Below, piece by piece: positions 11,463 through 39,480 of a stretch of DNA of 64,000 bases. The notes beneath the pieces are model-generated. The model ran no database searches. It worked only from the letters and a program-made list of their open reading frames with translations, and was not told the DNA's origin. The position numbers were made by a program, and so were the translations under genes. Origin of the DNA: Dimorphilus gyrociliatus (taxonomy: Eukaryota > Animalia > Annelida); contig CAJFCJ010000007.1 of the NCBI GenBank assembly GCA_904063045.1, positions 1,050,819-1,114,818 on the forward strand, in the 5' to 3' direction. How positions within the stretch are numbered: position 1 is the first letter of the stretch; each line of letters begins with the position of its first letter.

Positions 11463-11533
11463 AAATCATACAAACACATTCACATTTGCCTGTTTATATT
11501 CATTTTTAGCATAAATTTAAAAAGCTAATAGTG

Positions 11534-12890: not shown

Positions 12891-12904
12891 AATAGATGGC
12901 GCTA
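12891..12904 (+). promoter_or_regulatory. CTCF-like motif at the left edge of the Irx domain
   Basis: AATAGATGGCGCTA contains the YAGRTGGCR core of the CTCF consensus. A second forward copy lies at 14060-14066. Confidence 0.5.
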
Positions 12905-14801
12905 CATGTGGAGCTTTGTTGAAATAAGAGCACAAGCATTTGTTAGAGTCGTTTGTTATATTAAACTAGGAGCGGCTGTTGAATTACATAAGTTATTTTA
13001 TTTTAAAATAGACAAAACGGATAGGAAAAGCAGACGAAAATCTCTTTTCAGATAAAATAAGATTTTGGTTTTTTTTTTATAGAGAAGGAGGAAATTTACA
13101 GCGTTCGTTGTTTATTTCCCGTATACCGTTTCATTAACAATGTGAACACACACAGAGAGACAACTGATATGAAGTGTTTATATTTATCTAATTTTATCAG
13201 AGGCGCGTTATTTTAGGAACAATAACAATATTCACCGTTTAAACGCCAAGAAAGAGTAAATTGCAGAAATCTTGCTTATATGGAAGGGTGTAAAAACATG
13301 TTGGTGTATGCGTGCCGAGACGCCCTGGCCGTCTTTTACGTCGCTACCATGCAAAAAGTACATAAATCTTAAAAGGAATTACAGTGAGTCACTGCAATCA
13401 CTTTCGACATGTGTAAAAAGAAATTATTTAAATCTCTATATATTTCTGTAGGGCCAAGTTTTGTATTTCTAACACCTTCATAACACCTTAAGAATAAGAA
13501 TATATATAATATATATACAGAATAATAATTTCGGATATGCATGTTTGATCAGGGCAAGCTGATTCTACTATATACTTAATTGATTCTTTTCAAAGCGAAA
13601 TTAATGCCGGTTTAAACACCTATTCATATTGCCAAAGCAAAGGCAGTTGTGTGTTGTGGTATGTCCGTTGGTACACGTAATCTTTTTCATATACAACTCG
13701 TCACAAGTTGCTTTACATATTCAGGCGGTAGGCTTTGAAGTGAACAACGCTAAGCCTCTTGAGCATTGTGTTTGATGAAACTTCAATTTCCTTGTTTAGC
13801 TTCTGCTAAAGGGATATAGTCGCACATATATGCCTTTATGCATACGTAATTTGTTTTGCAATAAGTTGGCAATAAGCCGGTCAGCGTTGATTGAAACAAG
13901 CTATTTATTCTGCCAGTAAATGTCTCATATATATCGAATATACTTCTTGCGCAGTTGTGTTTACGTTCAGTCTGTGTGTAAGAATTAAATGAACTTAGGA
14001 TGGAAAGTTGACATTGCCGCCGGCGCGGCAAAGAGACGGATCAGGTAACTGATGTCTATAGGTGGCAGATGAGCTTATCGAGGTTTTGCAATTGCCGGTG
14101 CACTTACGTTGATTATAGATTATGTAACGTTAGTGCAATAATTTTACCTTTCTATCTTTTCCCTTTTTTTTTCTCTTTATTCGCGTACCAACTAGAAAGG
14201 TTATATATCATACTTTAGTCGGTATAGAAGGTAAAAGGGTACTAGTTAGCTTTAGCCTAGTTAAAAAGCAATCAATACAAATGATGAAGTCATGGAGAAG
14301 TTGGTAGCGGTGTTGGAATGCGGTGCGTTGACAAGTAGGCGGTTCTAATACCCCCCACAGCATAGTCTATCTGTTAAAAAGACACTAATGTAATTAGCAT
14401 ATAATCTGGTCAACGCGTATACGCACCGTCATTTATATTTATTTAATCTAATCGTCTCGGAGGGGAATAGAGGACAACGAATATGTAAATGAGCAATTTA
14501 AGTGCTGAAGATGGAAGGACGTGCATCAAAGAGAAGCGGTGCGCGTCCACGATTGTGCATACGCATTAGACGTTTAGAAAAGAGGGAAAACATGACGAAT
14601 GCGTGTCAGAGTTCATGCAACACAGTGTTGAGTATGCAATGAAGCATGATCAATCTGGCTCAATGTTTTGATTAGCATCAACTTCAAAGAAAGCCCAACG
14701 AACGTGATGTAGCACGTCCCCACCGTCCCATGATGCAGCGAGCACCTTACAGGTCAACAGTCAGAACAGTGTCAACATGACGTTCAAACCATTAGGCTGG
14801 T

Positions 14802-14886
14802 GGGCGGAGTTAGTAGTGTTAGTGGTCGATTTCCGCCGTCACTCAGCTACTTTTCAGGCGACGCGGCCGAAACAAGTGCTGATTGG
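14802..14886 (+). promoter_or_regulatory. Putative Irx-a promoter elements (GC box, inverted CCAAT)
   Basis: GGGCGGAG at 14802-14809 and ATTGG at 14882-14886, in a GC-rich patch upstream of the proposed ATG at 15012. Confidence 0.45.
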
Positions 14887-15011
14887 CTAATCCACTTTGA
14901 TAGTGGCGCCTCTACGCAAGCAGTTTTTCTCACATTAAAGCTCGGCAGTTCGTCGTTCTATTATAATCTAATGCTAGGCGATCTACTATATAGTGTGGAT
15001 TTATAAAAGTC

Positions 15012-17749
15012 ATGGCTTTACAGGTAATACAAGTACTGTTACAAATAAATAAATAAATTTATTACCTTATTCGCTATATCCCTTCATATTTATTTATGTA
15101 TTTGTATTTAATAATTGTTTATATAAAAATATATAATTTATATTGATAGCGTGTATATATATATATATATATATATATGTATTTGAACATTTGCAAGTAC
15201 AACTCTTGTTCTTATGTACTAAGTTTTAAATACATATATACATGAATACAAAAGTATAGATATATATATATATATATATATATGTATACTTATAGGATTT
15301 ATTAATAAATATGTCCTTAGAATGAAGAGATATATAAATATAGATATATCAATTTTGTATGTATATATTTATACATAAAATTACAATTATATGTCATAAG
15401 TTTAACATAGAATATATACAATATACATATGTATATATTTATATGTGCTTAAGTTCAAATATGTGTTTATGCATATTTATAAGCATACGCGTTAATATAA
15501 GTGAAATTTTTTGATGCGAACGCTCTTTTTTTAATTCGTAATATATCTCAACATAAAAGGGAGATATTAGCATATATATATATTAATTAGAATAATATAC
15601 AATCTGCCAGTATGCTTGGCCAGTGTACTTGAGTTTTTATTAGAATAATAATGTATAATGAGGGGCATAAATTTCATATATTCACTATCTGTCTCTTTTT
15701 CGTAGTCTGCAGCCGTGACGCCTTCAATGCGTAATTCGTCAAGCAGTGACGAAACATCACGCTGTGAAAGTAATCGACCCACTACCGATGCGCATTCGGA
15801 TAAAAAGATGTGGTGCAATCAGCCTCAAGCCTTAACACCTTCCTTTCCAAGATTCCCGCTTCCAGAAACTGCGTTTTCGTTGCCAGCACCACCAGGACTT
15901 TTTCATGTGCCACAGGAAGCGTTACCTCACATCGTAAGTGTGTTACTCTCACCCCCCTCATCCTTTACCGTTGCTTTTACACGTAGGCATACATTTCTTA
16001 TGTACAGTACATATTTAACTTATAAGCGCAACGCTCACTTCGAGTATTTCCCCATGCATATATGTATTTATTATGATATTATTAATTTATAATAAATACA
16101 CAAGCTATATAAGAAAGTATATATATATATATATTTATATGCATTTATATAGATTACGGGATGCATGCAAAATATTGTCTGACCGCCTGTGTGTATTCAA
16201 TACGGACATGTGTGCAGACAGAACGTTTCGCTTCAATAACTTTCGCCTGCTTTTTTATATTTTGTGACGATAATTAAATATCTATAAAACTAATCGATTA
16301 ACTCGCATCTGCTGGTTGGCAAGTGAAAAAAAGTGCAAAAGGATGCTATTTCGATTTTTATCGACTTTTCACTGTTATACAAGAGAATGGAGAGAATCCA
16401 TTAAAATAAATAATAAAAAAAACACAAATAAACAAAACTTTTAACAATAAATTTTTCTTTTAAGCAGAGTTCCTACGATTTAAAAGAAACGTCTGATGTT
16501 GTTAGAAATCTCGGCCTACCGTCCGGATATGTCTACGATCCAAGCTTGGCCGCCTCATACGCCTACGCAAACAGGTACGTGTCCGCTCACTGAACGCCAA
16601 CCAATAAGGCATCCGCCGACGTTGAGGGGCAACGTTGCAGACTGAGCGGCTCCAATGTTATTCTAAGCTGAATATTACATGCTACAAACAGGCAGAATAA
16701 TGCATGCCTTTCTGACAGTCTAGTTTATATATAGAGCGCGTATAGACAACGTCTCAACCAAGCTGGCCTTTGTACGTATATTGATCACACGGCTTTAACA
16801 TGCAATGCAAACAAACGCTTCTATTTCATATTTTATGCACATAACTATAAGTTCGTGCGACGAGTATAAACCGCTCGTGACGTTAACTAGCCGATCGTAA
16901 AAAGTCAAAAATTAACTCCCGTCGATTCCTCAATAACGAAATAGCGACGGGGGTTAGGCGTGGTAGGTTAAGTGCGATAGAGAGAGGGGGGGAAGAGATA
17001 GAATTAGAGCTACAGAGTTTATAGGGTGATTGGATTTCTTTATCTACGCACTTGAAATTAGGAGAAAACCATTAATAATAGCTTTTAAAACAATTAAACA
17101 GTGCTATGGATTTGAATGCTCGCCGGAAGAATGCGACTAGAGACGCTACAAATACTTTAAAGGCCTGGTTGTATGAACACAGAAAGAATCCGTACCCTAC
17201 TAAAGGGGAAAAGATTATGTTGGCAATTATAACTAAAATGACTCTAACTCAAGTATCCACCTGGTTCGCTAATGCTCGTAGACGACTGAAGAAAGAGAAT
17301 AAAATGACCTGGTCACCGAGAAATCGCAACGACGAGGAAGAAGAGGAAGAAGAAGAAGAGGAGGATGTAAAGAAATCGAGTTGTGAGAAATCCACGACTG
17401 AGTCGGATGAAGAAGTTATTATTGATGGTAAGTTCTAATTGTAATAAAAAATACAACGAAAAACATCATGAATAATTGATGAAGTATAAAATAAAACATT
17501 TTTTTGATTATCCAAACAGACGACAACACCGAGGAAGAAAAGGAGAGTCGTCTCGCTCCAGCTGAACCGTCGCCTCCTGCAGCTGCGACCAAGCCAAAAA
17601 TTTGGTCGTTAGCCGACACGGCGATCTCTAATAAAGAGCCTTCGCAAAAGAACAAACTCACACCTTCGCCGTCTAATTTGCTATTTACTCACTGGTTGTC
17701 GGGATTACCTACGCCTCTGTTTAGACCCTATAATACCCCCCACAGTTAG
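15012..17749 (+). CDS. Irx: Iroquois-class TALE homeobox protein, cluster gene 1 (Irx-a)
   Basis: Exons 15012-15023 (MALQ, tentative), 15706-15933, 16468-16574, 17102-17427, 17520-17749. Homeodomain [61 protein letters not shown], then a poly-Glu tract and IRO box [11 protein letters not shown]. Confidence 0.95.
15155..15285. repeat. (AT)n microsatellites in Irx-a intron 1
   Basis: Two (AT)n runs near 15155-15180 and 15258-15283. Confidence 0.8.
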
Positions 17750-20700
17750 TATGTTGCTGATTATCAGTAATAGTTAAGATATATACAGATATACATATAC
17801 ACTACGGACTACTGACAGAATTTTTATCTCGTCTAATCTTTCTTCCGTTCGTTTATATATTATATATATGTGCTATACGGCGAGTTGAGATGCATTTGTG
17901 TTGATAAGATATCAATGACGTCAAAGTATATCAACGACCTTGTCTTCCGAGTAGACTATTGCGTTGGACGCGATTTATATAGGAGCAATATAAGACGAAA
18001 AGCGATGATTCGGTGGAATGATAGTGCAATGGAAGACAGATGTCTTATCGTTTCAACGATAAACACTTTTGCCACTTATATGTATATATATAAGAGCGCT
18101 TACGTATCTGTTATGCGAATATATTCGACATCAGCGTCTTCATGCTCGAAAATTTAATTTTCTTTTGTATAAAAAGCATTTCTTTTTATTGTGTCAATCT
18201 TCCTTTAATAGACAAACGAATTAGAATAAAGAGAGAAAGAGAGACAGATAGAGACACAGACACTGAGAATGAGAATGAGAGAAAGAAAGAAAAGAGAATA
18301 TAAGAGGAAGATAGAAAAATAGAGAAAGAACTATAGCTTTATACACCTGCTCAATTATATATACGTATAGGTGCGTGTGCCGTGTGAAATAGGGCGCCTT
18401 CAAGCCTTCCGCTAATTAAAACGATAAGAATTACATGCCATCTGGCGGCCTTGCGTTTGGGAAGAGAGTAAACAAACGGAGAGATTCGCCGACAAAATGT
18501 TCGTGTCTATACATACATATTCCACAATAGAAAGTATAAAATGTATATAAGAAATAACGCAGAACCTTTTTCGTAGATACTTAAATGTATATAACGAATA
18601 ACACATTCTGCCATATATCTTATCCTGAATGGTACAGAGTGTATACATGTCCATTACAATATGGACAACATATACGTAATAAATAAGTTATGTATAATAT
18701 GGAAATGGGAATTTCCCATATAATCGGTCGTTGGCGAGAAAGATAGGAAATCGTGAGCGTAAAACTCCGGCGGGAAATGATGGAAAAGCGGAAGAATGCA
18801 AAGAGCGATAGAAGAGCGCTGCGCAGTCTGATTACAAACTGAATTGTTTGTGTTAGACTCACGCCAAGAAGTCGTTTCTTGGCGAGTTATTGCCGGCTGG
18901 CCGCCGGCCGTTTATTCTTTATATACAGTATACCGTATATAACGAACACCTCGGAGCTTTATAAAGTCGCCGTTTTATATGCTAGCTTCCGTTATATTCT
19001 TATCGTTTTCGTTCTTTCTTTATTCGTTTTTCCGTCTCTCCGTCTCTCTTTCCCCCTCATTGTCTTTTCCTTCTTTTTACTCTTTTCATCAATATTCCCT
19101 GTTTTTACAAAATAAATACATATTATTTATATATCAAAAAAAAAAAATTTTAAGGTATATACTATATACAATACATAGATAGTACTTGTTCGGTTGTCGC
19201 TTCTCCTTCAAAGAAAATTCGTAAGCAAAACACAACGCCGGCTCGCATTGTGCCCGAAATTGACTTGGCTACATGTACACAAAACGTTCAATCAAGCCGA
19301 CATGAACAAGCTACAATCGCGTGTTTATCTCTAAATATTGCGCTGCATATGAGCAAGGGGAGGCAGGTGCGCTCAGCATGCTCATGATCACTTCACACCA
19401 GTTAACAATGCGCCTATTCGTTGGAGTCGTCATTGTTGCCCGCCGGCTAAATAGCGAACGAAACTTTTTTTCTTTCCTTTCTATCATTTTGGCTTTTCAA
19501 ACTATTAGTTCCTTTTAATTTTATACTCCTACTTTATATCCCTAATTTCTAACACATTCACAATAGGTATACTATCTGTAACTATTTAGTAATACGCTCC
19601 GCACATGTTCACTAATAAATGTATCTCTGTAGTTGATAGGACAGCGTATACAACATTTACTAAATGAATGTATATATATGTATGTATACATTTCAAATGA
19701 AAATATATACCTCACATATATACTATTGTAAAGCGTAATAATAATAAGTATAAATATAAATATAAGAATATAAATATATAAATATGTAAGTATATAGATA
19801 TATATTTATGTATTGTAAAAAAAAGACCATAAAGCTGCGACAAATTGAACACTACTAGTCCGTAGACATTGACTGATGACGACAGTTGTTGTGTGCGACG
19901 ATAGGTCGTTATTAGCGCAGCGGGACGCGTTTAGTGGCGACTTTACTCCACAATTGGCCGATGCAGGTGCGAGCACCACACAAACACAACATTGCAATCA
20001 GGTGAAGTCATGCTGCGACAGCATTGATCATACACAACGCTTGCTCACAACAATAACTTTGCCTTCTTCTGCTTTATAATCGCCCTGCATTATGCACGGC
20101 GCGATTCGACCTTTATCGATTCGCCATTTCCCACCTAATTACGTTCGCCTTAATCGCTTCTAGTCTAACTACCGTTTCGTACGTCTATAGTTTTTTTTCT
20201 TTACGTACTTTAAACCTAATAAACTTCTCAAATCGAAATAGGGTTTATGTTTATTACACTAGTGTTTGTTTTATTTCAACTTTTCGGTTTCGAAATCACG
20301 CAATCACTGGTCACAAGTCAGTAATGAGCTTCTCGGCCCTTTGGGCTCTGCCCTACAAACTCATTGAGCCATAACCCGTGTCGTCAATAGTCGACATTCC
20401 TCGGAGAATCGTTTCTAATGGTATAACGACATACGTTCACAACTTTGCTTTCCATAAATAGCATGTATCGCACTTAATTCTATATACTTAGCAATTCATA
20501 CCCCATTTTCTTCTGCTTAGAGCCAGCGATTGGAATTTATATTTGTAATTATTACTTCAGTATATACAAGAGCAATTTTCAAGTCTTTCAAACGTTTCTT
20601 TATGCACACTTTTTTTTTGCATCACTCAATCATATAATATCCTATATATTTATAAATAAACGGTATACTGGTATTGGATGCGAGTGCACGTTATTCTAAC

Positions 20701-21979: not shown

Positions 21980-22034
21980 GGGGCGGAGCCAGCCTCTCAC
22001 CTCATTTGCATAATGTATGCGTTGATCAACCAAT
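21980..22034 (+). promoter_or_regulatory. Putative Irx-b promoter (GC box, octamer, CCAAT)
   Basis: GGGGCGGAG at 21980-21988, ATTTGCAT at 22004-22011 and CCAAT at 22030-22034, about 130 nt before ATGCAG|gtat. Confidence 0.45.
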
Positions 22035-22160: not shown

Positions 22161-24367
22161 ATGCAGGTATTTATATGAATTATGCATAAACCAGCATTTG
22201 TTTGTGTTTTATATGAAGATATAGATAAAAGTATGTCTGACTTCTATTATATATAGAATTGATATGTATATATATAAATATATCTTTAAGTATGCGATCT
22301 AGCCTAAATATTTTGTACATAAGAATTTTCTTTATAAATATTCATATATTATATTTATTCAAAATTTTAGTTTGTATACAGATATAGGAAATTAGGAATA
22401 TACACATATACTTATGTGATAAATTATAGATGCTGTAATGTCTCTTAATAACCCGCACGTCAATAAAGAATGACGGTGCAACGTAAGGACATAAATGGCA
22501 AAGCATTGTTTGTAGTTTGTCAACAAAGTACCAGCTGTCGCATATTGTATTGTCTTTGCTTCTAACACAGCAGTTCGTGTTTACAAACTGCTGCTTGTTT
22601 GTCAATGTCACAAAGCTGACTGTCTTGTCAAACATAAACGACAGACAACAATTGAAAAAAGTTGTGTCTCTGGATATACATATGTATTTACGAACTATAA
22701 GACTATTACACAAGTGTTTGTGTCAAATCGGAGTTTTTGTCTGAGTTCAGAGTGATTCCAAACAGCCGCGTGCTTCTTATCGTTATAACTTTCATTATTG
22801 TAGAATTTGCATAATTTATACAAACAGATGGCGCATAAAACTTCGAGAATTGGCTCTGCTGCGGAGTTGGAATTTTGTACGCAATCGAAATCGAAATTAT
22901 CTCATCAATATTCTCAGGCATCGGGAGATAGGAATATATTCGTATCGCCTTTGGTAAATATTCAATAATACACTTATATACAAGTATACTATCTATATAC
23001 ACTGAATACATATATCAATATGAGGGTATATAGATATGTTTAAAAAATCAATTATTAATTGTTATCTTTATTGCTTCGTTGTTTTATGTAACATTTACGG
23101 TTTTCTTTATTTTGTAATAAAGGCATCGAACTTGGACAAAGGAAATTCATTCGTTTCCCAGGACTTTCAAAGCAGCTATCCATACACATGGTAGGTATAA
23201 TATAAAATAAATTATTCGTGGTTTCGGCCTGATTAAGAATGGCGATAAGAAGTAATGACAGCGTCTGCCTTCTTTCAGCTATTCACAAGCTGATTTAGCC
23301 GCTCGACGCAAAATGGCCACAAGAGAAGGTACTTCTATACTTAAACGATGGCTGTATGACCACCTGAAGAATCCATATCCGACAAAAGGAGAGAAAATAA
23401 TGTTGGCCATTATCACAAAGATGAGCTTGACTCAAGTGTCCACTTGGTTCGCTAATGCACGACGGCGCCTAAAGAAAGAAAATAAAATGACATGGTCGCC
23501 AAAGAATAGAACTGACGAAGATGGAGAAGAAGAAGAGGAGGAGGAGGAAGATGAAACTAATGATTCCAAAAAAAATGATGATGATGATGAAGAAATTGAT
23601 GTTACAGGTAAAATTTTATTAATTTTCAAAGCACAATTTTGTAATTTAATATTTAACTATAAAAATTTGAAGGTGTTTAATAAATATACGGTATTGAGAT
23701 TAGTATAGGAACGCAGGTGCCAAATACGATTGTTGACTGTTTGTTAAAGGCGTATTTGACAAAGAGTTTAAAATGTGCAACATTATGTAATAAGCATTTA
23801 GAGTTATTTCGTTGTCATAGGTTATTGACGTATTAGTTGTTTCTAGTAATTCCACCGAAAAAATTGCATATAAATTACCATAATTTATTACGACTTACGT
23901 ACTTAAGGACAAACGATAAATCATCGAATCGAATAAGAAAGTGGTTTATATACTCTGATTTCTGATTGATGTACGAAACGACGCGCGGCGTCGCAAATTT
24001 GACAATATAGCCAGAGGCAATGCCACTTTCCCGTAGAAAAAATGTTCCATTAAGCATCATCATCGACAATACGAAAATGTGTGTAATTGCAGGAAACTTG
24101 GACGAGGACGCTTTATCTGATGTTGATAATGCCGCATCAAAGCAAGTAGAAGCTCCTTTAATAGCCGAGGATAGTAGAGGAGAGAAAAAAGGGAAAATTT
24201 GGTCTCTAGCCGATACGGCAACTTGCCAAGAAAATGAAGAAGAGAAGAGGAAACGCCGGGAAGAGCGACGCCGTTTCTCCACCTTCCCTTCCTTCCTCAA
24301 TTATTCTCCATATTTAGGATATGTTTCCATACCAACGCCATCTACAGCTTTTGTCACTTTAAGATAG
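22161..24367 (+). CDS. Irx: Iroquois-class TALE homeobox protein, cluster gene 2 (Irx-b), divergent
   Basis: Exons 22161-22166 (tentative; alternative start at 22828), 22828-22953, 23123-23190, 23279-23607, 24093-24367. Homeodomain [61 protein letters not shown], then an acidic tract and IRO box [11 protein letters not shown]. Confidence 0.93.
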
Positions 24368-24574
24368 TGTTGATAATCTTTTGTTAATGTGCTTAAAATC
24401 GTGTATATATGGATACGTATGTATACAATTGGGATGTGTAGTATAAATCTGTATATACTGTATATCTGTATATATACGATATATATCTGTAAATGCATGT
24501 ACAAAGAGGCCGCGTCTAGTCGAGTTTGTGATATAAACGCGCTCAAGTTGTATATTCGTTGTACGTATAATTGT

Positions 24575-24620
24575 ATATATATATATATATATACAGTTAT
24601 ATGTATTATTATGTTTTTGA

Positions 24621-24665
<45 letters not shown>
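24575..24665. repeat. (AT)n microsatellites downstream of Irx-b
   Basis: Long TA runs near 24575-24592 and 24626-24665. Confidence 0.85.
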
Positions 24666-24667
<2 letters not shown>

Positions 24668-27489
24668 TGTATATATGTTGCTCGTATGTATATATAACAA
24701 ATACAATAATATAAGTTATTTCTAATTTATAAGTACTACGTGTCGTACTTTGTATTTATTCAACTGCACTGTAAATAGTTCTTTTTTAAAAAAAAGATGT
24801 CGACTTTTGACACAAAATAACAAAATCTCATATTCTTCAATTTTTTTCTTGTATTATTAATAACCAGGTATAAAAAAATAGGGTAGGTCAAGGCGGTAGG
24901 TTAAAATATACCTTTTAGCTGAATATATTATACATATATATCTGAAACGGGCGGAAAGGTTGAAGACAGCCATCAGATAGCACGAAACTACAGACAACAG
25001 GGCGCCTGTTGTAAGGAGTAGATAAAAAGGTAGTAATTATTAAGTCCGACATATAAATATATATAAACTATATACAATACATATATATCTATATAAGAAA
25101 ATATAGGAACTATAGATATACACGGTCAGCACATATATATATATATAAAGGATATAACTACATATGTTTATAGATAGATAGGCATATCTTATATATATAC
25201 ATATATATACAATATACTAATATATATATATTTATATATATACAGTGTATTTATATAAATATCTAACTATAAACTAATACTTAGCAAACGAAAGTATGGA
25301 TTTTAATTTTTTTTTATTTGTTGATGTTAAAAGTTGAAAGAAGGGAAAAAAACCAAGGGTTGTTGAATTTCTCCTGAGAATTGAACAGAATTGACTGTAT
25401 TAAGTTTGTATATTTAAATAATTATTTAAAATAATATGGTAAGGGAGTAAGGGCATAAAGGTAAATTTAGATGAAGCAATAGTAAAGGATGAAACAGGTG
25501 AAAAAAGTCTGATGAGAAAAAAAGCAACGGTGATCGCGCGCGTCACTTATCGAACATCTATTGTCGTTAATAGTCGGTTTCAACTTTCGGTGGCGCCAAT
25601 TGTGATTTAGCTCGCAAACAGACTGTATATATAGAAACGACTTAAATGCTATACGATAATATCTTTCTCGCCCAACCTCTCTCGTCCTCACCTCATTTAT
25701 TCGGTTATTTCGGTCATCTTATAGCCCCCTATCACTCCTTTCCCGCATCATTTAAAGAAAAGGCAAAAACCATTTCATTATAAATCTAAATTACTCTTCT
25801 TCGCATGTACGCATAACAATATATCTATATATTACATATTGGCACGCGTCCAGGTGGCTACAAGCTGCCAAAGTTCAAACGACCGATCGCCGAGATGAAA
25901 AGAAACAGTATCTGGAGTGAAACGAGAGACTAGGCACTTGTATGAAAACATAGACGGAAAGATGGTATGCATATGGGTCAATACAGTCTTATACCCCACA
26001 CAGGCTCGCTCACACACACACGTACACAGACACACACACACAAACACATAGGAAATTACGTTAACGCCATTCCTAATTAGGTTATAGGCGTCTCACACGA
26101 GACAGAGGGCGTCGGTTGCTTCTAATTATTTAATTTAGCGGCAGCTATCAATCAGAACTAGTCAGCCTTGTCGCCGACCGAGTTTAGTAATAGTTTTACA
26201 CCCCGCTGACGAACGCTGACCGCGCAATAGGAATTTGCATAATAACGCTTAGCTGCGCGTACCAAGCCAATATCCGCCGTCACACACATTATGCACACAG
26301 CTGCCTTTATATATATGGACGCGAAAAACGACGTCTTTCGCCGGCGTCTCATTTGACGGCGTTAGGAGACGGGCGCGCAGCTTCATTTCCGGGCAAACAA
26401 TGCAAGGGTCAGCGCCATATTGAAGTCTACTACTTATCTGCGTAAACAGTGCGCAATTCGATCATCTCGCGTCTGTAGGAGTTTTTTAGGAGAGTAAATT
26501 TTACATTTATGTCTGTGTATTTAACGGTCAAGTATTAGAACGAGAGTTTTACGTGATACGTTCATTTCCCTCGAGTAGAGCATAATCAAGCAGTACTATT
26601 GTTTATTCGACCTTATTTCTTTTTCTCCCCTTTATCCACAGCATAACTATATTCATATATGGACAGAAAAGATTGGAACAGAAGCACATTTAGAAATAGG
26701 GCAAATTTTCTTAATATGAACACTTTTTCTCAATAACTCCATTTATAAAAAAATTAATTATTATTAATATAAACGTACTCAAAAGATTATATATATATAT
26801 CGTGTGTAGATTAAAGTTAAAAAAAAGAGCAATATAAAGAGAATTTGCAGAAAAAAAGGAGCTTAAGACCTTTATACTATGTAATATACGCTTTCTTAAA
26901 ATATATTCACTCTCTTGAACTTTGCTACATAACAGAATAACGTCTTGGCCCGTTTCGTGTTTATCGATTAAACAGATCGTGCTTGAATAGAAAGTGGGCG
27001 CGCGTATAAAAGTCAAACGAACTCTTTATCAGGGCTGCTCACTCATTTGCAAACTCCTTATAACAATAAAGACAATCCTCTTAAAGCATATTGCACTGTC
27101 AACTGTCATCGGTCTTAGTGGCATTTCCATTAATTGACTGTTTATCCATCGTCCGATAACTTATCGCTTCTTTATATAGAGCGGGCCGAGCCTAACGAAC
27201 GCCTCACTTCCACCGTTTTTTTTTTCATGCGTCACTATTAGCGATTAGACTTTACTATTTAGATATGGGATATTGCAATCTATAGGCCTCAAATGAAACA
27301 GATAATGATAACAATAATAATATTTTATACGAAATTTGTTAAAAGTTGATTGCATATTCATCATAATTTTCTTTTTACATATTTTTCTTTTCAGTAAAAA
27401 AATTTCGGACGCAATAATTGCCCGCACTCGAGACCGACGCGTCGTCCGCACCGACAAGAACACTTTCGAAAGTAATCAATCACACCAAC

Positions 27490-28618
27490 GCCACCTAGGT
27501 GGGTAGGGAGTGAAAAAAAAAGGCAGAAAATTACGCCAGAAATCGACTTCAGACAGAGGCAAAGGGTTAAAACGTCAGTTTCTTGATAGCCTTCTTCTTT
27601 CTCACACCTTCCCAAGTGGCGAACCTATACAAAAGAGGGCGTTTACGGTTGGTGTCCCCTCTGACTAGGCACTCGAATAAAAACTCCCCTCTCTTTATAT
27701 ATATTATAGCTACTAATAGGTTTTACATATAGAGCGTATTATACATTTAATCATTGGCGCCATCTGCATTTCATCGCAAGCCCTAGGAGAACCCCCGCAA
27801 ACTTAATGAAATTGCGATTACGGTCTTTAGTCGCCATCAGTCATCCGCAGAATTATAATGTCAGTTCGGTAAAACAGAGTTTAGCGGTGGCCGACTAGCA
27901 GCCAACTATAGAATATAATTAAACACACGCCTTAATATAAATAAGAAATCTATAGCGGTATGCAAAGATTTTCCTTTTACTTCCCTAATTCTCCGTAATC
28001 GTTCGGCCTTTATCAAAGCTACGGACGAACGAAACGACGCTTAAGATAAGATCTCGCACGGCTGTAAACAGGTGCATCACAAGCCGTCTCTTACGCAAAA
28101 TTTATTCACCGATGCCATCTGTTTGATTTTTATCGTTTTTCTCTTCACTAAAAAATAAACTATTTCCACTGTAATCACGAACTGTCCACCTTCGTATAAG
28201 ACGACCGATAACATAAAAGACGCTAATTACCGAGGAGAATTTAAAACGTTTTCACTTTTTCCCTTTCTATCTTTGTGCCGTCCACCCACTTCATTCTTCA
28301 AATATTGGAATGTTTTAAGAAGCCTCTTTTCAATTACTTTCTTTATCCAAAAAATAGGCGGGGGGAAGGGAAGGCAAAGGGGAAAAGAAATATAGAAATA
28401 TAGACAGAAAAATAGAAGCTGCTTCTCTCATTTCAAAAGAAAAAATTAATAAAAGAAAAAAAAGAGAAAAATGCTACTTTTTTTATTATTGTTTACTTAA
28501 CACGTGTAAGATTGTTTTCACGTAGAGGAAAATGCGTATGTGTATATGTGCGTATGTGTATATATCTATGTAATAGGCGATAATACCCAATAACACTTAA
28601 ACTGTAACGCCATCTAGT
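27490..28618 (-). promoter_or_regulatory. Array of four same-orientation CTCF-like motifs
   Basis: GCCACCTAG at 27490, GCCATCTGC at 27759, GCCATCTGT at 28114 and GCCATCTAG at 28609; each reads YAGRTGGCR on the minus strand. Confidence 0.5.
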
Positions 28619-31288
28619 CTGTTAAACTTGAACCTTCTTCTACTTTTCGAGTGGAACGTTGTGATTTTTTGGCTACGCTATAGATAAGAAATCTTATATG
28701 TTAGGCTTATATATATATATTACAATATACTAATACATTACTAAAAACTATATGTATATTTATATCAAATAATGACGTAAGTTTAGTAATGCATAAATCG
28801 GTTTTGGCTATAAATATTAATATATCTGTCAAACTAAAAGTGTACATAGAAAATTTGTATCGGTCGGTGAATGCAAACACCTATAGTATGAACGTACTAA
28901 GTATAAAGAACATATTGTATATGAATATATCTATGTACTTGACATATATAGATACACTTTACATGCAAATACATTTATCAAATAAAGAACGTTCAGTCTA
29001 CGACGATAGTCTATCCATTCTAGAATATTATTTAAACATATGTGATATGTGTAGACTGCTCGTCTATTTATTTAAATATATTTATATAAAAAATATGTAA
29101 GTCTTATTTATATATATATAATTTATATACAGTATATTTATCTATATGCATAAGTCGAACAAAGTTTGTCCATGTCTCAAATCAATTATTTATCCTGCTT
29201 GAAGAACGTCATCGGCGGAGATTTAGAGTTGTCTTTACGCAGAGTGCGCTTCATTTATATATATTGATTGCCGCTTTAAATATAATACGGAAAGTATAAA
29301 CGCCGCAAAATGCAGTGCCACGTCAGTTTAGCAAAGAAACGCTATCTGGGCGTCACTGTGCAGCTGGCATCAACCATCTAGGGAATTTGATAATGTCAAC
29401 AGTTTGTGGTGAAAGTCTATTGTTGCTGGACTCGAGCCCTGATTGAGGCTGGCAATTTGCGAAAGACGCCCATTTGACGCCCTCGCGTAGCATGTTAAAC
29501 AGGCCGTCCAGAGGCGTCGCATGTACGGTATACACAACGCAGACGACCGGATGTAGTAGCAAGTGGAAAAACGTGTCGACGCTGTGCGTAGCCTACACTA
29601 ATGGAAGGCGTCTAGCATTCAGGCGTCGATTCTAGCAATATATAGTCATTGTAGTCACCTATGGTGCATGAAGTAGCGATATGAAACACGAAAACATCAT
29701 TAAAACTCGTCATACTCTGTCAGCCTCACATATAGCCTTTCTATGCATGTCGTCGTTTTTTAAAGCATAGATTGCGCCCCTCCGTGAACTTCAAAGCGTT
29801 CCGGAAATGAATAAAAACATCAACTTTTCTAGCTCTCTTCAATGAATGATGCTTTATGCCAGTACGTCACTATTCCACATTTTTGCCGGCTCCAATTACG
29901 CGTAAACATACACAATATGCAGTAATCACCAAACTCTATGTAGAAATGCCCCAAAACAACGCGATAGGAATACTAAACACTTCCTTTATTCTAATGTATA
30001 AATAGAATTGAATAAAATTACATACGTTATGTACTTTGATATTGAAATCCTATGACATATATAATACATCTATCCCTCTACAATCTAAGCATAGATACAA
30101 AAAAGAGAAATTAGAAAAGAACGTGCAGTAGGTTGGGGCTTAAACGATTGCCCGCTTGCTTCTGCAATGTATATATACTTTCTAATGCGATAAAGCTGTG
30201 TTCTCCTCGTAAATCTTATTCGTAATGAGCGGTTAAAACCTTGGTCGGAAACTTGTTGACCTATAACCTTCGATAGATATACAGATAGGCCATTTATAGT
30301 CGAATTTTCTCTTTCCCTTATTAACTAAGTTCTTTTTATTTTTTTTTTGTTAAAGCAACCTCGATCTGTAACAGACAAGTTTAGAGTTTTTTTTTATCCA
30401 ATGGAATCTCAGAAGCAGATTATCTACATAAAATTGTTATTTATACTCATTTATAACTCATTTATTTACTTATTGAATAAAGTCTTTTGTAAGTAGCCCA
30501 ATTTCCTTCTTCAAGTTTCCCTAATGAATTATCAGATGTCAAATCTGTTAATCAGTATCACTATACATACGCCTATAAATTAGGCTTTCTCTGTATACGT
30601 ACATTATCTCATTTTATCTGATTGCCATAGGGGATTTAGGGAATTGTCTTTCCTCAAAGATACGTCATTGAAAGGTGGAACAATTGATATAATTAGATAA
30701 TTAACGGAGCTTATTCTACTTTTCATTTTAAAACTAAATGGACGAGGGGCAAGTCTTGTAAGAGTTGCTTGTACTATGTAAGTTTAACGGTTGATATATA
30801 CCAGCTGATCTTCTGGTTACTAGTGAAACTGTTAGAAAAAAAAACTTGCACTAGATCGGGCTGGCGGATAAGAGGAAAGGAAACTTAGAAGGAGTTTTAT
30901 TGAAAATACACCGTCGACACTTGAAAAATTTTTCCAATGTTTTTTATCTGTCTGTCTATCTTTCTTTTTCCCCTATCTAGTAGCTCTTTCTTTCCGATTT
31001 TTCTTACATACACCACCATTTACTGTCATTCTCCCTCCTTATTCCTCTTTATCTTTCGTTTTTTTTCTTACCTCTCTTGTTCTTAGCTTCCACAATGTTT
31101 TATTGCGTTTATATTGCCTTCTTAACCTCCGCTTATTTGCAACCACTGACTGATTACGTAAACCCCTTCCCTATCTTAACGATTGTATAACGAAGAGAGT
31201 TTGGCTGCTGGAACGGTTTAACCCAAAAGCTTAAGTAAATCTCTCCTCAAGCTAATTATGTTTTACAATTTAGTACGAACTTGAAAAT

Positions 31289-31309
31289 GGCGGGGTTCGA
31301 TCCCCCGTC
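31289..31309 (+). other. tRNA T-arm-like hairpin / RNA Pol III B-box without a recognisable tRNA body
   Basis: GGCGGGG-TTCGATC-CCCCGTC: 7-bp stem (one G-U pair) around a 7-nt TTCGATC loop. No D-arm, A-box or acceptor stem upstream. Confidence 0.4.
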
Positions 31310-32377: not shown

Positions 32378-34365
32378 ATGGCGTCTTATGCGCAGTTTAC
32401 ATATTCTTCTGTGACCTCTGCCCCGGTATGTTCCCTGTTTCTCTTAAATAGCTAGAGAAGGAGCAGTAGCTTTTCCTCTTTTTTTTTCCTTACTCTCTTT
32501 TCACTGTTTTTTTTTTACTAATACGTTCTCCTCACTTTCTCTTCTCTACCCTAATAAAACAGCTGCTCGCCCCTTCAACATCGGCACCTTCGCCCTCCAC
32601 CTCCTCTTCACCTACAACGAATTCTTGTTGTGATGGAACTAGGACGGTCTTCACCGATCCAACGACAGGACAAGCCCTATGTTCCTGCCAATATCCGGCA
32701 GCACTGCTTTCATCTAGGATAGCTGCAGGTTTAGGATCCGACTATACGTCTTCCTACGCTTCATCACAGTCCTATGTCAATCCTTTCACGGATTCCTTTT
32801 ACGGACCGTTGGTGAGTGAAATTTATTTCTAAAAATGACTAATAGTACCAACAATAGAGAATTGAGGGGTAGCTCAGGGGGAGGCAGTGAACAAAAAAGG
32901 GGAAAAAAGAAAACGACGTCCGACGTCACAAAGCAATAGTCATGCACAAGTGCAAGCTCAATAAAGCACGAGAGAGGCATAAGCGGCGCAGAATGACGAC
33001 TAAATTGAGTTAGTGACGGCGCGCTTTAGTGTATATACATTGAGGCGTCTACTGACGAGCGCATAGCATGACGCTTCTACTTTGCCATTTTCATGAGACA
33101 GTATATAGTGCGGTTTAATGTCATTAAAGGATTGTAAGTTTTCGTGCTACATATTTTTTTTGTCGTTTAGACGGCTTCTGCTTATGCGGCCGCTGCAGCA
33201 TCAAATGATCTTAAAGACGCAGCTTCTTCCGACACGGTTTGGAGATCGATTCCTCAACCTGCAGCCTATTCCTCACCTTATCATTACGACGCTGCCATGA
33301 CCCCATATGCCTACAATGGGTATGGAATATCTTCTTTTTATCCCATTCCGCCCCTGTCCCAAAGTCCCTAATTACAATGATTGTTTCATAACTCTTTTTC
33401 CTCCACACTATCCTTTTTCCTTTAATACAAAAAAGAAGAAAAAGGCTTGGATACAAATTAACCATTTTTTTCTTCCTTTCCTTTGTTATTAGTTACGGTG
33501 CCGTTGATTTAAACGCCAAGCGTAAAAATGCTACGAGAGAATCGACAAATACTCTAAAGGCTTGGTTGTACGAGCATAGGAAAAATCCTTATCCTACGAA
33601 GGGTGAAAAAATCATGTTGGCAATTATAACGAAAATGACGTTAACCCAAGTTTCTACTTGGTTTGCCAACGCTAGACGGAGATTGAAGAAGGAAAATAAA
33701 ATGACTTGGTCACCTAGAAATCGTTCAGGAGACGACGCCGAGAGCGAGGACGATGACAAAAGTAACAATAACGATGACAAACAGGGGTCGGATATAATAA
33801 GCATCGATGGAGGTAAGAAAAAGGCTTTTAATTTTTTAGTAGAACAATTAGAATATACTATCTATATTAATAAGAGGAACGGACGTAATTAGGCCTGTAT
33901 ATATTCACAGATAGGATAGATAACGAAAAGGCCATTAACGGCGAAAAGACAGAGAGTAATAAAGATAAGCCGCGAATTTGGTCTCTAGCCGACGTTGCAA
34001 CTTCATCGAATCCACCATCTAGCTCAACAGCAAGGATTCAATTAGGTAATTCATGGAGTACATATGGTCTAACTAAACTACGGCTACCCTCTAATTTTCA
34101 CCGACCTATGGAGGCAGGGAACTCTGTGAACGGTAGGCTTTTACCTATTTATTCACTTAACCTTAATTTGCGTAAATGCTTATAATAAATAGCTAATATC
34201 ATATTGTTTAAGTGAACCTTATCAACTTAAAAATTCTCGACTTAATCATTATGAATAATTCTTTTTATCTGTTTATATTTAGAGTGCGAACCTGGAGAAA
34301 TTAAAATCTCTACCCCAAAGTCTCATTTTTCAACGAATAATTCAATAAGATTAGGCAAAACATAG
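32378..34365 (+). CDS. Irx: Iroquois-class TALE homeobox protein, cluster gene 3 (Irx-c), most canonical
   Basis: Exons 32378-32425, 32563-32811, 33171-33320, 33493-33812, 33911-34132, 34283-34365 (last tentative). N-terminus MASYAQF; [20 protein letters not shown] motif; homeodomain [26 protein letters not shown]...[14 protein letters not shown]; IRO box [11 protein letters not shown]. Confidence 0.95.
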
Positions 34366-34540
34366 GCTAAAATTTCAACTCGACGCGATTAAATGTCCGT
34401 TCGTTAAAAGCAACTTGGCGTCTATGGAATGGCGCACGGAGTCATTGACAACCTGACTGCTATATGTATACATTTAAATTAAATAATTGTATTCTTGTAA
34501 TATAATATCTGTACTATGTGGAAAAAAAAAACTAATGGTA

Positions 34541-34542
<2 letters not shown>

Positions 34543-34571
<29 letters not shown>

Positions 34572-34722
34572 TGTATTTACTTACTTAAAATATAAAAAGT
34601 ATGAATCTACAATGTGTAATATACTAATACAAAATTACTATAATTTATATAAATATACATATTCATATATTAATATATTTATATATATATATTAATATAT
34701 ATATATATATATATATATATTT
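34543..34722. repeat. (AT)n microsatellites downstream of Irx-c
   Basis: TA runs near 34543-34570 and 34680-34720. Confidence 0.8.
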
Positions 34723-37700
34723 ATTTATAATTTGTGCTTCCATTCTCGAGCAAATATATATAAAATTTGTATTTATATATTTATTCATATAATCTTTACA
34801 TGTGCTTGTAAATACTCTTATTTTGTCACAAAATGATATGCATGCTAGACGAAAAATGGATTTAAAAAAACAATAAAAAACTCAATGAATTCTTCTTCTT
34901 TATAAAAACAATATATGTGTGTCAATGAAATAAGCATAAAATGCTTAAGTAAATAAATAACAAATTAAGGATTTAGTTGAATAGGTAAAGGTGGGTGGAG
35001 GAAACTGAAAAAAAAAGAGAAGAATGGAGATTAAAAGAAGGAGAAAGGAGAAAATTAAAAAGGAATAATTCTCTACTTGAGACGTAAAATGACAGCATTT
35101 TTTCTCGTTTTCAAGTGTTTACTTAATTTCAAATATTTAAGAAATATTTTTCGTAAGATAGGAGTAAAACCGAACTTAGAAAGTATAACCGGAGGCTGTA
35201 TATCGCGACACTTGTGAGGGCTTTAGGTTCGATCGGGATTAGTAAATGTGAAAGCTTTGCCTAAAGCATTTTGTAGCAATTCCATCCGAGCAGGGGTGGT
35301 AGGGGGTAAAGGAATGAAAAGATAAGAGAAAAAGAATCCTTAAAGCCTTTTAACCCTCAAATTAGCAGGAACTTTCATTCTTTATATCTTAATCGTCTAT
35401 TATTTGTTTTTACTTCTGTTCATATTATAACGACACTCATTCACTTCGATTATTCGAGAAAAGAAAAGATATGAATAGAAAAAAGAGAAAATTTAGCACT
35501 TTTTAACCCTGCATAGGACTGAAAGGGGAAATAGTGAAACCCATAAAATATACAACCTGATAACATGTTCGAACAATAGCAATAGCGGTAAATGTACAAG
35601 AAAATAGGTGGAGTTTAAGCGTATGAAAAGGAGAAAAGAGGTGTGCAAATAGAGAACGCGTGAAGAGTCGCCTGGAGCTCGAGTACGGGCTCTAAGCTGC
35701 CAGGTCTTTTTCATTCACCGTCAAATAGAACTTAACTACTATTTGCTTCACACAAACAGCTCCGCACTTAACAAAACGGCAGCCGTATTTATATGAATGC
35801 CGATGAACAATTATATTGGACTAATCGCTTCAACGAGTTGAAAATTTTGGACAAAAACATAAAGGAAAGAAGAAAATGGTAAAAGTGAACTAACAGAAAA
35901 AATGTGTAGTGTAGGTATGTGTATTTACTTATTGAAATCGAAGGACATTGAGTGATAAGAAGATAAAGGACACACGCAAACACGCAGATGGAAGTAAAAA
36001 AAAAAGGGATAAGACGACGTGGAAGGGTGTTAGGGTTATAAGGGAGAGAGGGGTGGAATATATACTTGGCAGACAAACACTTGTCCTTTCACACGCGGGG
36101 CAACCCGAGCATAAATCAATCCAACCGTTTTTGCGCAGCTCGCCAATTGATGAGGCGAAAGAATGGATTAAGGCAAATGTTTCTAATTAGCTCAAATGCG
36201 GGGCGGCCTGTAATCTGCTAGTGTTTAAGTAGAGCCGCTCACGGATCGTTGAATGCACTGCAACTCTTTGAATATATGATGTATCTCTACGTATCTATAT
36301 TTTATTAGCCTTTAACTTTCTTTTCTAATTTTCTTTCTTTTTTTTCATCTCATTTCCTTCCGGAGGGAGTCTGGCATCCCTGACTCTTTTTCCGTAATGT
36401 CATCTCTTTCATTCATTCGATCTCTCTATCTACAAACTATATACACCGTGTTTTACATTGCCCTAATTCTGTTATTCTCTTTGTGAGAATTTAAATAAAT
36501 TTTCAGCACCACAACGTTTACTCAATGCCGTTTCGTTGCTGCAGAGAGTGAGTATCGATCAAAGTTCAATGGGCGACTGCTTTTGTGTTGGACGCCAAAC
36601 TTTCAATGTAGTATTGATGCAAAGCTTTCGGGCTCGTTAATCCAAATAATTAAACAAACCCGTCGAATTAATATCTGTATTCTCTCTCTCTCCCTCGCTC
36701 GCTAACTCTGTGTCTGTCTATTTCCCTGAAGCGCATGCGTTTATACGTCAGGTCGTAAAGTTCGATGCGCTAATTGCCCTTGGAAACATTGACCGTCGTC
36801 TTCCGGCTAATCAGCGTGCAGTCGCTTTTATCCTCCTTTACAGAGCCTCAATTAACCAAGTCCGAAGTCTAACGAGCTCGCAGAATTGCACGTGTAGACG
36901 CCCCGCCTCTGTTTCAGAAGCCTGCTGTGCGCTCGAGGCAAATTATTACATTTCTCCTATATCTCTCCTAGTTGATTGACGTAATGGGTAAAATGTTCAG
37001 GAGCCGGAAAGTTAGATACATAGCTTGTGATGAAAGATTTATACATATTAAAAGATGTAGAATTGTTGTTTATACATTGGTTTTGTGTACTGTTAATGAT
37101 TTCGTTGTTTTCAGTCGATAGAGTGGAAATTTTTTTTTTTGTTAAAACTGCACTGCTTCATGAGAAAGGAGTAATTCGTCTACTGCAATTATTTTAAATG
37201 TATTCCCTATTATTCTCACAAACCCCAACATTTTACCGCATTTATGAAAAAAAAACGGTTGTTTTCAACATTTGTTCGATTTGATGCAATTATGTGCCAT
37301 TTGCGTTTATGCTGATTACCCTTCCGCACGCTTTTCTACTGCAATTGCGACCGAGTTGCAATGGTGCGGAATTCTTTGAAATGACAAACAATCGTAGACG
37401 CGTTTATCCAGATAATCTTCAATCAGAATGTTCTAAGCTCGCCAATCGACCGGCATTTTCGAGTGGCAAACTTTGCCAGATTCTTTTTCTCTATTTAATA
37501 CTCAACTAAATACACTCTCGCTATACCAGTATATATCTTCGTAAACCAGTTTGCCTATATACTATACATATACACCCATATTGTAACACCATTATGTGTA
37601 TATTGACATTGGCACCATACACGCAGGTGCGATTACTAATTTAAAACAATATCCAACAGATTTATACAGTCAAAATATTTATAGACACTGCTTAATTACG

Positions 37701-39468
37701 TAATTTCAACACGCAGTGAGGGTCCTTTCCGTAAAGTGAATTTTTCTATAAATATATACATGTATTTATTTCCATAAAAGCAAAAAAGTGCTTACCCTTT
37801 TAACGGGATTTTTTTCATATATTGCTGTACATACTGATTGTCCGTATTATTCCATATTTTTTACTTCATGTATATACTCTTACATCTGTTTTGAATATCT
37901 TAACTGATAAGCTTTTATAGAGATTTAATGCAATCAGGCCTAGTGCTATCACATACAAAAACCGTTCACCGCGTGTGATTTACGAGTGTTGTTGGTCGTA
38001 CGGACAGTTTAACAGAAAGATGACACGCTTGATAAGCAAACGATGTCAAAGTGCGCATCATCCATACAAACAGCAGCTACCGATGAAAAACAACGATTGG
38101 GGTGGGAAGAAGAGCGAATATAATATTTTTGAAAAATTGATAGAGAGAAAAAATAACGAATAAACGAACGAATTGGAAGCAAAAGGAGGATAGAGAGAAG
38201 AGAAAAACAGAGGAGAGACCATCGTCGATTGGGGAAGGGCATAAATTTCAATTTGCTTCGTTTATCGGTGCTAAAGCGCGGTTTTATCGGCGAAAAAGTT
38301 TTGATAGGCACTCGGAGAATACTCGTTGGAAGTCAATAGATGATGTAATATAGTATAGAAAACAATGGATCGTTGAGCGGACTGGAGTTGGCGTTCAACT
38401 TCCTCTTTAGTTACTGTGCGTATACAACTTAATACAAGTTATATGCTATGCACATAAATATTATTTGTTGAGCATATAGAACTTAATTGTTAATAGTTTT
38501 TAAACGATAATCCGGTATTGTTCCTTACACAGGTACATATATGGAGCAAAAGTAGTACAATGTATCCCTAACTAATAACACATTTCGTTCCTGTCATTTC
38601 TGCCTGAACGAGGGCGAAATGTCATAAATAAACACCGTCGAGTTGATTTGTTTACTCACCACGTATGTATAATAGAGATTCGCTAAGAATAACAAAGAGA
38701 AAAAGAAACAATTAAATAGAAATTTACTATATACAGTAAACGACAAAAAAAACGTTGGCGGATCGAAAGTTGATTGACAAGGTATTCGAACCTTATCAAC
38801 GGTAAACACGCGCTGCTCTAGTTAATATCGGGCTAATACAAGGTGTTATCAATAAAGTCTTTGTTCTTCTTGTCTAATCATAGCCACTATCTAGATAAGG
38901 AACGAAAACAGCAAATGTTTTCTCAATACCTTCTGTCGCTCTGGATTGGTGAGGGTGACAATGTTCTGACAAGTAAGCAGATGCTCACTACTATCAGTTT
39001 TCAGACAACAGCCGTCGGGGAGCGGTAAATTAACTAGGCGATAAAGAAACGCATTTACAGAACAAAGAGTAGAAAACTGTAATCCTTCGCAGTCACTATG
39101 TAAACAACTATGCCCTCATTTTCATTGATTAGCACCATGCGCCCGGTTGCCGTTCTGCGCTATATAGAAGCGCCGCTAACATTTCTGTCAAAAGTGTAAT
39201 AGCTTCCGAAGGCGTCACTAAGCGTTCAATCAAGATCTAGTTGAGGAAAATGACCGTCATTAAACGCACGCACATTTGAAAACGCCGACACTGAGGTGTG
39301 TTGCGCATGTTTCGCCTATTATAAGAGTGCTTTCGAATTGATTTAACAGCGCCATACTGTTTTCAACATCACAATGCAATCGTTGAGAAAAAGTCGTATG
39401 AGCGCTTCTTTTAAAAATCCTTTTCGTATTATCTAGTTATAAGGTGATGGCTTAAATCACAACAACCA

Positions 39469-39480
39469 GCGCCATCTGTA
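39469..39480 (-). promoter_or_regulatory. CTCF-like motif at the right edge of the Irx domain
   Basis: GCGCCATCTGTA, i.e. TACAGATGGCGC on the minus strand, about 200 nt from the TLK stop codon. Confidence 0.5.

Follow-up and report, generated by a model that had tools for sequence, protein, structure and literature searches.

The window analyzed here, a 64-kb stretch of the Dimorphilus gyrociliatus genome (CAJFCJ010000007.1:1050819-1114818) that is 100% identical to assembly GCA_904063045.1, harbors three Irx genes arranged in tandem, all on the + strand, between ~15.7 and ~34.4 kb. Irx-a (15715-17749, +) contains a homeodomain exon at ~17082-17435, an IRO-box exon at 17495-17746, and a stop codon at ~17747-17749; its 5′ exons are uncertain. 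Irx-b (22814-24561, +) is composed of RNA-supported exons at 22814-22952, 23122-23189, 23278-23604, and 24090-24561, with a coding sequence spanning 22828-24367 and at least one more 5′ exon upstream of 22814. Irx-c (32378-34365, +) has an annotated coding sequence of 356 aa, with the homeodomain exon at ~33494-33892 and the IRO box near 33976. A Homeobox_KN match (E ~1e-19) in three exons reveals TALE homeodomains with the Irx signature; the three domains are mutually 70-78% identical, and a named relative among the matches is "iroquois-class homeodomain protein irx-3-like." Downstream of the homeodomain, all three genes carry a K-P/G-K/R-IWSLAD motif, which we take to be the IRO box. An earlier note on this DNA had likewise recognized an Irx cluster here. 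No called genes separate the Irx genes where the window is annotated (15.6-29.7 kb and 52.6-64 kb lie outside the public annotation obtained), and the open reading frame at 28789-29100, considered as a missed first exon of Irx-c, has neither similarity to the Irx-a 5′ open reading frame nor a Pfam match. Scanning the window for Rfam families and tRNAs gave zero matches, and exact-protein look-ups of the open reading frames at 8842-9555 and 62149-63960 likewise returned none.

Dispersed through this window is a short motif, YAGRTGGCR, with 16 exact matches on the two strands compared with a mean of 1.06 (maximum 4) in 100 dinucleotide-preserving shuffles, an excess over chance of about 15-fold for the window as a whole. 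An unbiased k-mer scan leads to the same motif: simple repeats aside, the most over-represented words are CAGATGG, AGATGGC, and AGATGGCG, the last occurring 10 times against 0.73 expected. The earlier note had anticipated roughly one copy by chance, as the shuffles confirm, albeit from a GC content of ~31% where the computed value is ~34%. All 15 copies that it reported are present on the strands it gave, but each of its coordinates is one base too high, and a full scan of both strands recovered one copy that it had overlooked, at 12282-12290 (+). Its count of 13 non-coding copies holds among the 16; the remaining three (12282, 22825, and 24336) are exonic.

The motif occupies nearly all intergenic gaps of this compact window and, relative to annotated coding sequences, is found at promoters, shortly past 3′ ends, within a large intron, and at a divergently transcribed gene pair. 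The leftmost site, CAGATGGCA at 267-275 (+), is intergenic, ~0.74 kb past the end of a NAV-like coding sequence and 2.5 kb ahead of the one for asparagine synthetase, whose start codon (2761) is preceded at a promoter-proximal distance of 405 bp by CAGATGGCG at 2348-2356 (-). The 0.8-kb gap of a divergent pair, formed by a 237-aa gene (gene B; ATG 5581, -) and an acyl-CoA-synthetase-like gene (ATG 6388, +), encloses TAGATGGCA at 5952-5960 (-). Another copy of CAGATGGCA, at 7416-7424 (+), resides in a ~285-bp intron of an AMP-binding gene, which is large for a genome whose median intron measures 66 bp (PMC7854359). TAGATGGCG occurs twice at CFAP161, once inside a coding exon (the overlooked 12282 copy) and once at 12893-12901 (+), 235 bp downstream of the stop codon, where it marks the left edge of the Irx domain.

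Within this domain, TAGGTGGCA at 14059-14067 (+) is intergenic and precedes the first candidate Irx-a open reading frame by ~1.65 kb, and CAGATGGCA at 18436-18444 (-) follows the Irx-a stop codon by ~0.69 kb. Two sites fall within Irx-b exons. The ATG of CAGATGGCG at 22825-22833 (+) probably serves as the start codon of Irx-b, and TAGATGGCG at 24336-24344 (-) lies antisense to the part of the coding sequence that specifies the C terminus, eight codons short of its stop. The spacer separating Irx-b from Irx-c contains four sites on the same strand within 1.1 kb, namely TAGGTGGCG at 27489-27497 (-), 3.1 kb past the Irx-b stop codon and embedded in a near-palindrome, CAGATGGCG at 27758-27766 (-), CAGATGGCA at 28113-28121 (-), and TAGATGGCG at 28608-28616 (-), which precedes the annotated start codon of Irx-c by 3.76 kb. 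The right edge of the domain is marked by CAGATGGCG at 39470-39478 (-), 203 bp downstream of the stop codon (39681, - strand) of a tousled-like kinase (TLK) gene, and the rightmost copy, TAGATGGCA at 61793-61801 (+), is flanked by a TRIM-NHL gene (ATG 60018, -) and by a C2H2 zinc-finger gene whose 3′ end faces it. An explanation of the motif as start-codon context was rejected, as ATGGCG (Met-Ala) opens a real reading frame only at the Irx-b site, those at the other sites extending for just 7-30 aa.

YAGRTGGCY (2 observed, 1.45 expected) and the vertebrate-type G variant YAGRGGGCR (1 observed, 0.81 expected) are not enriched in the window, and the worm form is hence specific for T at the K position of the CTCF consensus, where vertebrates tolerate G. 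The looser RAGRTGGCR is found five times against 1.5 expected and adds sites that lie 237 bp ahead of the TLK start codon and in the gap separating a coiled-coil gene and a catalase gene.

The core fits the CTCF consensus CCAS-YAG-RKGGC-RS, and the worm motif can be written as YAGATGGCR with a weak C-A-S preference on its 5′ side and Y-T on its 3′ side. Across the 16 sites, a small sample from which only a weak signal can be read, position -3 is C in 7, position -2 is A in 8, and position -1 is C or G in 11; position +9, which follows GGCR, is T or C in 14 and G in 2. Of 19 occurrences of AGATGGC, 15 are preceded by C or T and two by A. These preferences are typical of CTCF rather than YY1, if only weakly so with 16 sites. 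Judged by core and flanks, the copies are real CTCF-type sites of a kind already known, and the assignment of the motif to the CTCF core in the earlier note appears sound. A CTCF ortholog has been reported for the species in its genome paper (PMC7854359, Supplementary Fig. 8). The C2H2 gene at 62146-63960 was rejected as the CTCF gene, its best solved relative being ZNF568.

The consensus recognized by YY1 is AAGATGGCGGC. It is conceivable, though unlikely, that a factor other than CTCF binds the word, be it YY1/Pho or a zinc-finger protein particular to this lineage; the CAG forms might alternatively be recognized by a proneural bHLH protein. The motif does contain the GCCAT core of YY1/Pho (ATGGC on the other strand), half of the sites include the E-box CAGATG, and CAGATGG without the following C is itself over-represented, with 11 extra copies. 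However, the depletion of A before AGATGGC and the rarity of G after GGCR, where the worm motif instead favors Y and Y-T, run opposite to the YY1 consensus and disfavor YY1/Pho, and an E-box reading of the motif overall is rejected because the other half of the sites (8 of 16) begin with TAG. In addition, HOMER assigned the corresponding genome-wide motif to CTCF (PMC7854359). Equally, one might ask whether the over-representation is functionless, a compositional or mutational quirk or the remnants of an old dispersed repeat, which we regard as highly improbable. The shuffles never exceeded four copies, close variants lack enrichment, and the motif is centered in ATAC-seq peaks genome-wide (PMC7854359). 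A repeat or transposon origin was rejected given that the flanks differ between copies, which are therefore independent, and that no repeat family was found to cover the sites. Conservation does little to settle the matter: in a close relative (87-93% identical, compared through Logan assemblies) the sites at 18436, 22825, and 24336 are unchanged, but so are 52-70% of all non-coding 9-mers, a background so high as to be uninformative. The 18436 site is retained together with its 10-nt flanks at 93% identity, and at 87-90% identity the 39470 site keeps its core AGATGGCGCT with the first base changed from C to A.

From 12.6 to 39.7 kb, as the earlier note had observed, the non-coding sites comprise two in + orientation at the left followed by six in - orientation. 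Yet it is not clear that this convergent arrangement around the Irx genes exceeds chance. Before correction for the ~1,300 windows of this genome that were inspected, a convergent block this long arises by chance among the 13 non-coding sites with P=0.039 and a convergent or divergent block with P=0.073, a runs test on orientation gives P=0.19, and with the three exonic sites restored the pattern breaks, all 16 sites yielding no qualifying convergent block. Weak variants on the opposite strand occur at 25851, 26103, and 27633, but they were not counted as evidence against the pattern because their variant classes are not enriched. Nor is the Irx locus special in motif density, with 0.42 sites per intergenic kb inside the domain and 0.34 outside (P=1), and hence no concentration at its borders or within it. 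The enrichment is therefore genome-wide rather than linked to Irx, and the copies around the Irx genes are numerous only because the intergenic spacers there are long (3-8 kb).

Spans of 4-27 kb, such as those between the sites here, are far below known CTCF loop sizes. The nested convergent-loop architecture advanced in the earlier note, in which the sites would serve as orientation-dependent CTCF/cohesin anchors around the three Irx genes, is unsupported, and we accord it very little credence. In its favor are the succession of two + and six - sites, the same-strand cluster in the Irx-b/Irx-c spacer, which resembles vertebrate boundaries, and the reported CTCF ortholog. Against it stand the marginal orientation statistics and the even density described above, as well as the genome paper, which sees "no clear directional arrangement" between neighboring sites (PMC7854359). 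Recent functional work assigns CTCF loop anchoring to vertebrates and not to invertebrates: between them, two 2026 preprints and echinoderm Hi-C detect neither an effect of motif orientation nor loops anchored by CTCF in invertebrates. The echinoderm contact maps show no orientation pattern, invertebrate genomes show no convergent-spacing signal, and invertebrate orthologs are reported to lack N-terminal cohesin-halting activity and to be unable to anchor loops when placed in mammalian cells. A Hi-C or Micro-C contact map for D. gyrociliatus was not found among the papers searched. A related proposal, that the two + and six - sites and the four-site cluster form a real orientation-dependent boundary system that sets the Irx genes apart as distinct regulatory units, through cohesin blocking or directional pairing, strikes us as just as remote; if true, oriented CTCF function would have an example among protostomes.

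We consider it likely instead that nothing sets these sites apart from the CTCF-type motif found throughout D. gyrociliatus regulatory DNA, and that they act locally and irrespective of orientation rather than as loop anchors. CTCF is the top motif in the ATAC-seq peaks of this species, mostly at promoters (Martín-Durán et al., 2021; PMC7854359). The worm ortholog would bind these sites locally and, once bound, may function as a promoter-proximal regulator or as a short-range boundary between neighboring transcription units, presumably without regard to orientation, by analogy with flies and echinoderms; the sites would not pair as orientation-dependent cohesin anchors. Several observations sit less comfortably with such ordinary, local sites. 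The eight non-coding sites of the Irx domain lie up to 3-4 kb from start codons, beyond the promoter-centered picture of the genome paper, and their two + and six - pattern is clean; four same-strand sites in 1.1 kb are unusual against the "single motifs" described there (PMC7854359); and the lack of YAGRGGGCR enrichment indicates a preference somewhat unlike the textbook consensus.

Irx clusters probably have separate evolutionary origins in different lineages. The vertebrate convergent CTCF/cohesin anchors, including those of Irx clusters, resemble the present sites in their core, in the apparent + then - order of non-coding sites around a developmental cluster, and in the same-strand site cluster; they differ in that the worm motif is T-specific, the spans between worm sites are 4-27 kb, the orientation pattern of the worm sites does not exceed chance, and loop anchoring by invertebrate CTCF is unsupported by current functional work. 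The Drosophila CTCF insulators, which are promoter-proximal, lie at Hox boundaries, and depend on Cp190, offer a protostome parallel, with a similar core, frequent placement at promoters, gene boundaries, and between neighboring developmental genes, and no loop-extrusion orientation rule, although cofactors such as Cp190 are arthropod-specific. The open-chromatin motif of D. gyrociliatus itself belongs to the same genome and motif class as these sites and is likewise found near promoters, in intergenic DNA, and within enlarged introns, whereas the paper illustrates the Hox cluster rather than the Irx locus and stresses single promoter motifs, in contrast to the distal sites and the four-site cluster of the Irx spacers (PMC7854359).

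That the motif is in excess throughout the D. gyrociliatus genome is already known and documented. The broader question on which the locus bears is whether orientation-dependent CTCF looping dates from the first bilaterians or from vertebrates, spiralians having barely been sampled; were a 27-kb annelid locus to use nested convergent loops, the origin of the mechanism would move much deeper in animal evolution. Such a deeper origin is not supported by the evidence here, and the Irx locus is at most a convenient, compact place for testing the looping idea rather than a discovery.

An exact pattern scan of both strands of the window recovers 16 matches to the CTCF-type word YAGRTGGCR (sites are named here by their first base in window coordinates), against a mean of 1.06 and a maximum of 4 in 100 dinucleotide-preserving shuffles. 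The excess over about one expected copy described in the earlier note is thus borne out. All 15 sites it listed are present on the strands assigned, each recorded one base too high; the list was incomplete, 12282(+) having been overlooked, and the GC content of the window is ~34%, not ~31%. Since an unbiased k-mer ranking of the window places CAGATGG, AGATGGC, and AGATGGCG at the top, simple repeats aside (the last with 10 copies observed vs. 0.73 expected), the motif is no artefact of the pattern originally chosen. The 25-nt flanks are unrelated between motif copies in the window, and window repeat searches found no direct, inverted, or tandem repeat family covering the sites.

CTCF-type motif abundance is already published for the Dimorphilus gyrociliatus genome, which encodes a CTCF orthologue, in which the CTCF motif is the commonest motif in ~10,000 ATAC-seq peaks, and whose peak-bearing introns are enlarged (PMC7854359). 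Flank preferences in the window match CTCF and support the CTCF-type identification that had been proposed: C or T immediately precedes AGATGGC in 15 of 19 cases, with A depleted; a pyrimidine follows GGCR in 14 of the 16 sites, with T at the next position in 10; and the 5′ flank carries a weak C-A-S preference. The consensus of the competing factor YY1/Pho prefers A before AGATGGC, and neither the depletion of A at this position nor the pyrimidine after GGCR fits YY1/Pho. An E-box reading is excluded for the motif as a whole because eight sites begin TAG. Both YAGRGGGCR (1 vs. 0.8 expected) and YAGRTGGCY (2 vs. 1.45 expected) occur at chance level in the window, and the worm form is therefore specifically YAG(A>G)TGGCR; the looser RAGRTGGCR occurs 5 times vs. 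1.5 expected. The CAGATGG 7-mer has 19 copies in the window vs. 3.1 expected, and is also in excess when no C follows (11 copies, 7 of them CAGATGGA; e.g., 9548, 35985, 42707, and 43134). These copies could represent weak variants of the CTCF-type motif or E-boxes for proneural bHLH proteins.

The genomic setting of the sites was drawn from public gene calls at two loci of CAJFCJ010000007.1, 100% identical to the window across 38.5 kb. These comprise asparagine synthetase (2761-4487, +), a 237-aa gene (4868-5581, −), an AMP-binding (acyl-CoA-synthetase-like) gene (6388-8591, +), an LRR protein gene (8842-10930, +), CFAP161 (11534-12658, +), Irx-c (32378-34365, +), tousled-like kinase (39681-42602, −), and a 2837-aa coiled-coil protein gene (46193 to about 55000, −). 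A word search identifies ORF 40047-41510 as the kinase, its 90% cluster including CAD5117020.1 of D. gyrociliatus, and a 2071-aa ORF within the coiled-coil gene has weak Pfam matches of coiled-coil type only. To the right of these are genes for catalase, a TRIM-NHL protein, and a C2H2 zinc-finger protein. The 604-aa, many-fingered ORF of the zinc-finger gene (62146-63960, −) has no exact product among the public gene calls; as a candidate for CTCF itself it was rejected, its best solved relative being ZNF568. With a 90-aa cut-off the ORF list is empty from 9558 to 15715, an apparent gene desert of 6 kb left of Irx-a; public calls fill part of this stretch with the remainder of the LRR gene and CFAP161, and the desert is ~3 kb.

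Exons hold three of the 16 sites, and the earlier count of 13 non-coding sites stands. Site 12282(+) lies in a CFAP161 coding exon, 22825-22833 is a perfect motif copy, AAACAGATGGCGCAT, holding the probable Irx-b start codon, and 24336 is antisense to the final eight codons of Irx-b, the latter two placed in frame by a joined Irx-b translation from window sequence. As the motif includes ATGGC (Met-Ala), some genome-wide matches may merely be start-codon contexts. Non-coding sites are found past the 3′ end of a NAV-like gene to the left (267), 405 bp before the start codon of asparagine synthetase (2348), in the gap of a divergent gene pair (5952), inside an enlarged intron (7416), and past the 3′ end of the zinc-finger gene (61793); RAGRTGGCR contributes one site 237 bp ahead of the start codon of the kinase gene and another in the coiled-coil/catalase intergenic gap.

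Measured between the stop codons of CFAP161 and the kinase gene, the Irx domain is 27 kb long, as previously estimated, and holds eight non-coding sites, all in long spacers: 12893 and 14059 upstream of Irx-a, 18436 at 0.69 kb past the Irx-a stop, four at 27489-28616 in the Irx-b/Irx-c spacer (3.1 kb past Irx-b and 3.8 kb before the annotated Irx-c start), and 39470 at 203 bp past the kinase stop. Site 27489 sits within a near-palindrome, CCACCTAGGTGG (27480-27513), which places a partial motif on the opposite strand too. With 22825, just ahead of the Irx-b start codon, included, site density per intergenic kb is 0.42 within the domain vs. 0.34 outside (P=1). The motif excess is not peculiar to this locus; the Irx genes are site-rich because intergenic DNA there is plentiful.

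The earlier note had read the strand order around the Irx cluster as nested convergent CTCF loops, an architecture that is disfavoured, being unsupported both by orientation statistics and by current knowledge of invertebrate CTCF. Across the window the 13 non-coding sites run + − − + + + − − − − − − +. Before any correction for how the region was chosen or for the many windows read in this genome, a convergent block of at least nine turns up in 3.9% of random strand assignments to these 13 sites, and one of either polarity in 7.3%; a runs test gives P=0.19, collapsing the four clustered sites to one raises P to 0.17-0.30, and no qualifying block exists with all 16 sites, exonic included. No consistent relation was found between site orientation and the direction of the nearest gene. 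The genome-paper authors, who place the motif mostly at promoters and report neighbouring sites to be without clear directionality, favour a role for CTCF in gene expression over chromatin architecture (PMC7854359), a view that a later review repeats, and in echinoderm Hi-C CTCF motifs lie at boundaries without an orientation pattern (PMC13317027). Of two October 2026 preprints, one reports the convergent-spacing signal to be absent in protostomes and echinoderms, and both report that loop anchoring in mammalian cells fails with invertebrate CTCF orthologues, which in one of the two prefer promoters; annelids were not sampled in the echinoderm or preprint work.

The three Irx genes share the + strand, and each encodes an Irx-type TALE homeodomain and an IRO box. 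RNA supports Irx-b exons at 22814-22952, 23122-23189, 23278-23604, and 24090-24561. Three source-study runs listed as "DNA?" are RNA-seq, considering that they contain GT..AG joints spanning Irx-b introns, and Irx-b is clearly expressed there. Long TA microsatellites (24574-24676 and 25133-25262) lie directly 3′ of Irx-b, where RNA contigs end.

A 4.3-kb contig from a coral-aquarium metatranscriptome is colinear with 24873-28707 in the Irx-b/Irx-c spacer at ~95-99% identity, with many small indels; among the differences listed (to 27774), none falls at sites 27489 or 27758. Coral tanks therefore seem to harbour a diverged lineage of Dimorphilus, whose DNA, or else an intergenic transcript that was not spliced, ended up in an RNA library. 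A second relative, 87-93% identical in DNA, is present in Logan assemblies of runs SRR23372216, SRR23372228 to SRR23372231, and SRR31984831; it covers 16.1-24.7 kb and 34.8-41.7 kb, taking in portions of the Irx-a, Irx-b, and kinase regions. Sites 18436, 22825, and 24336 are identical in it, and AGATGGCGCT persists at 39470 despite a C-to-A change in the first base of that site, against a background in which 52-70% of all non-coding 9-mers are also unchanged. Possibly a cryptic sister species, this relative would be of use for comparative footprinting.
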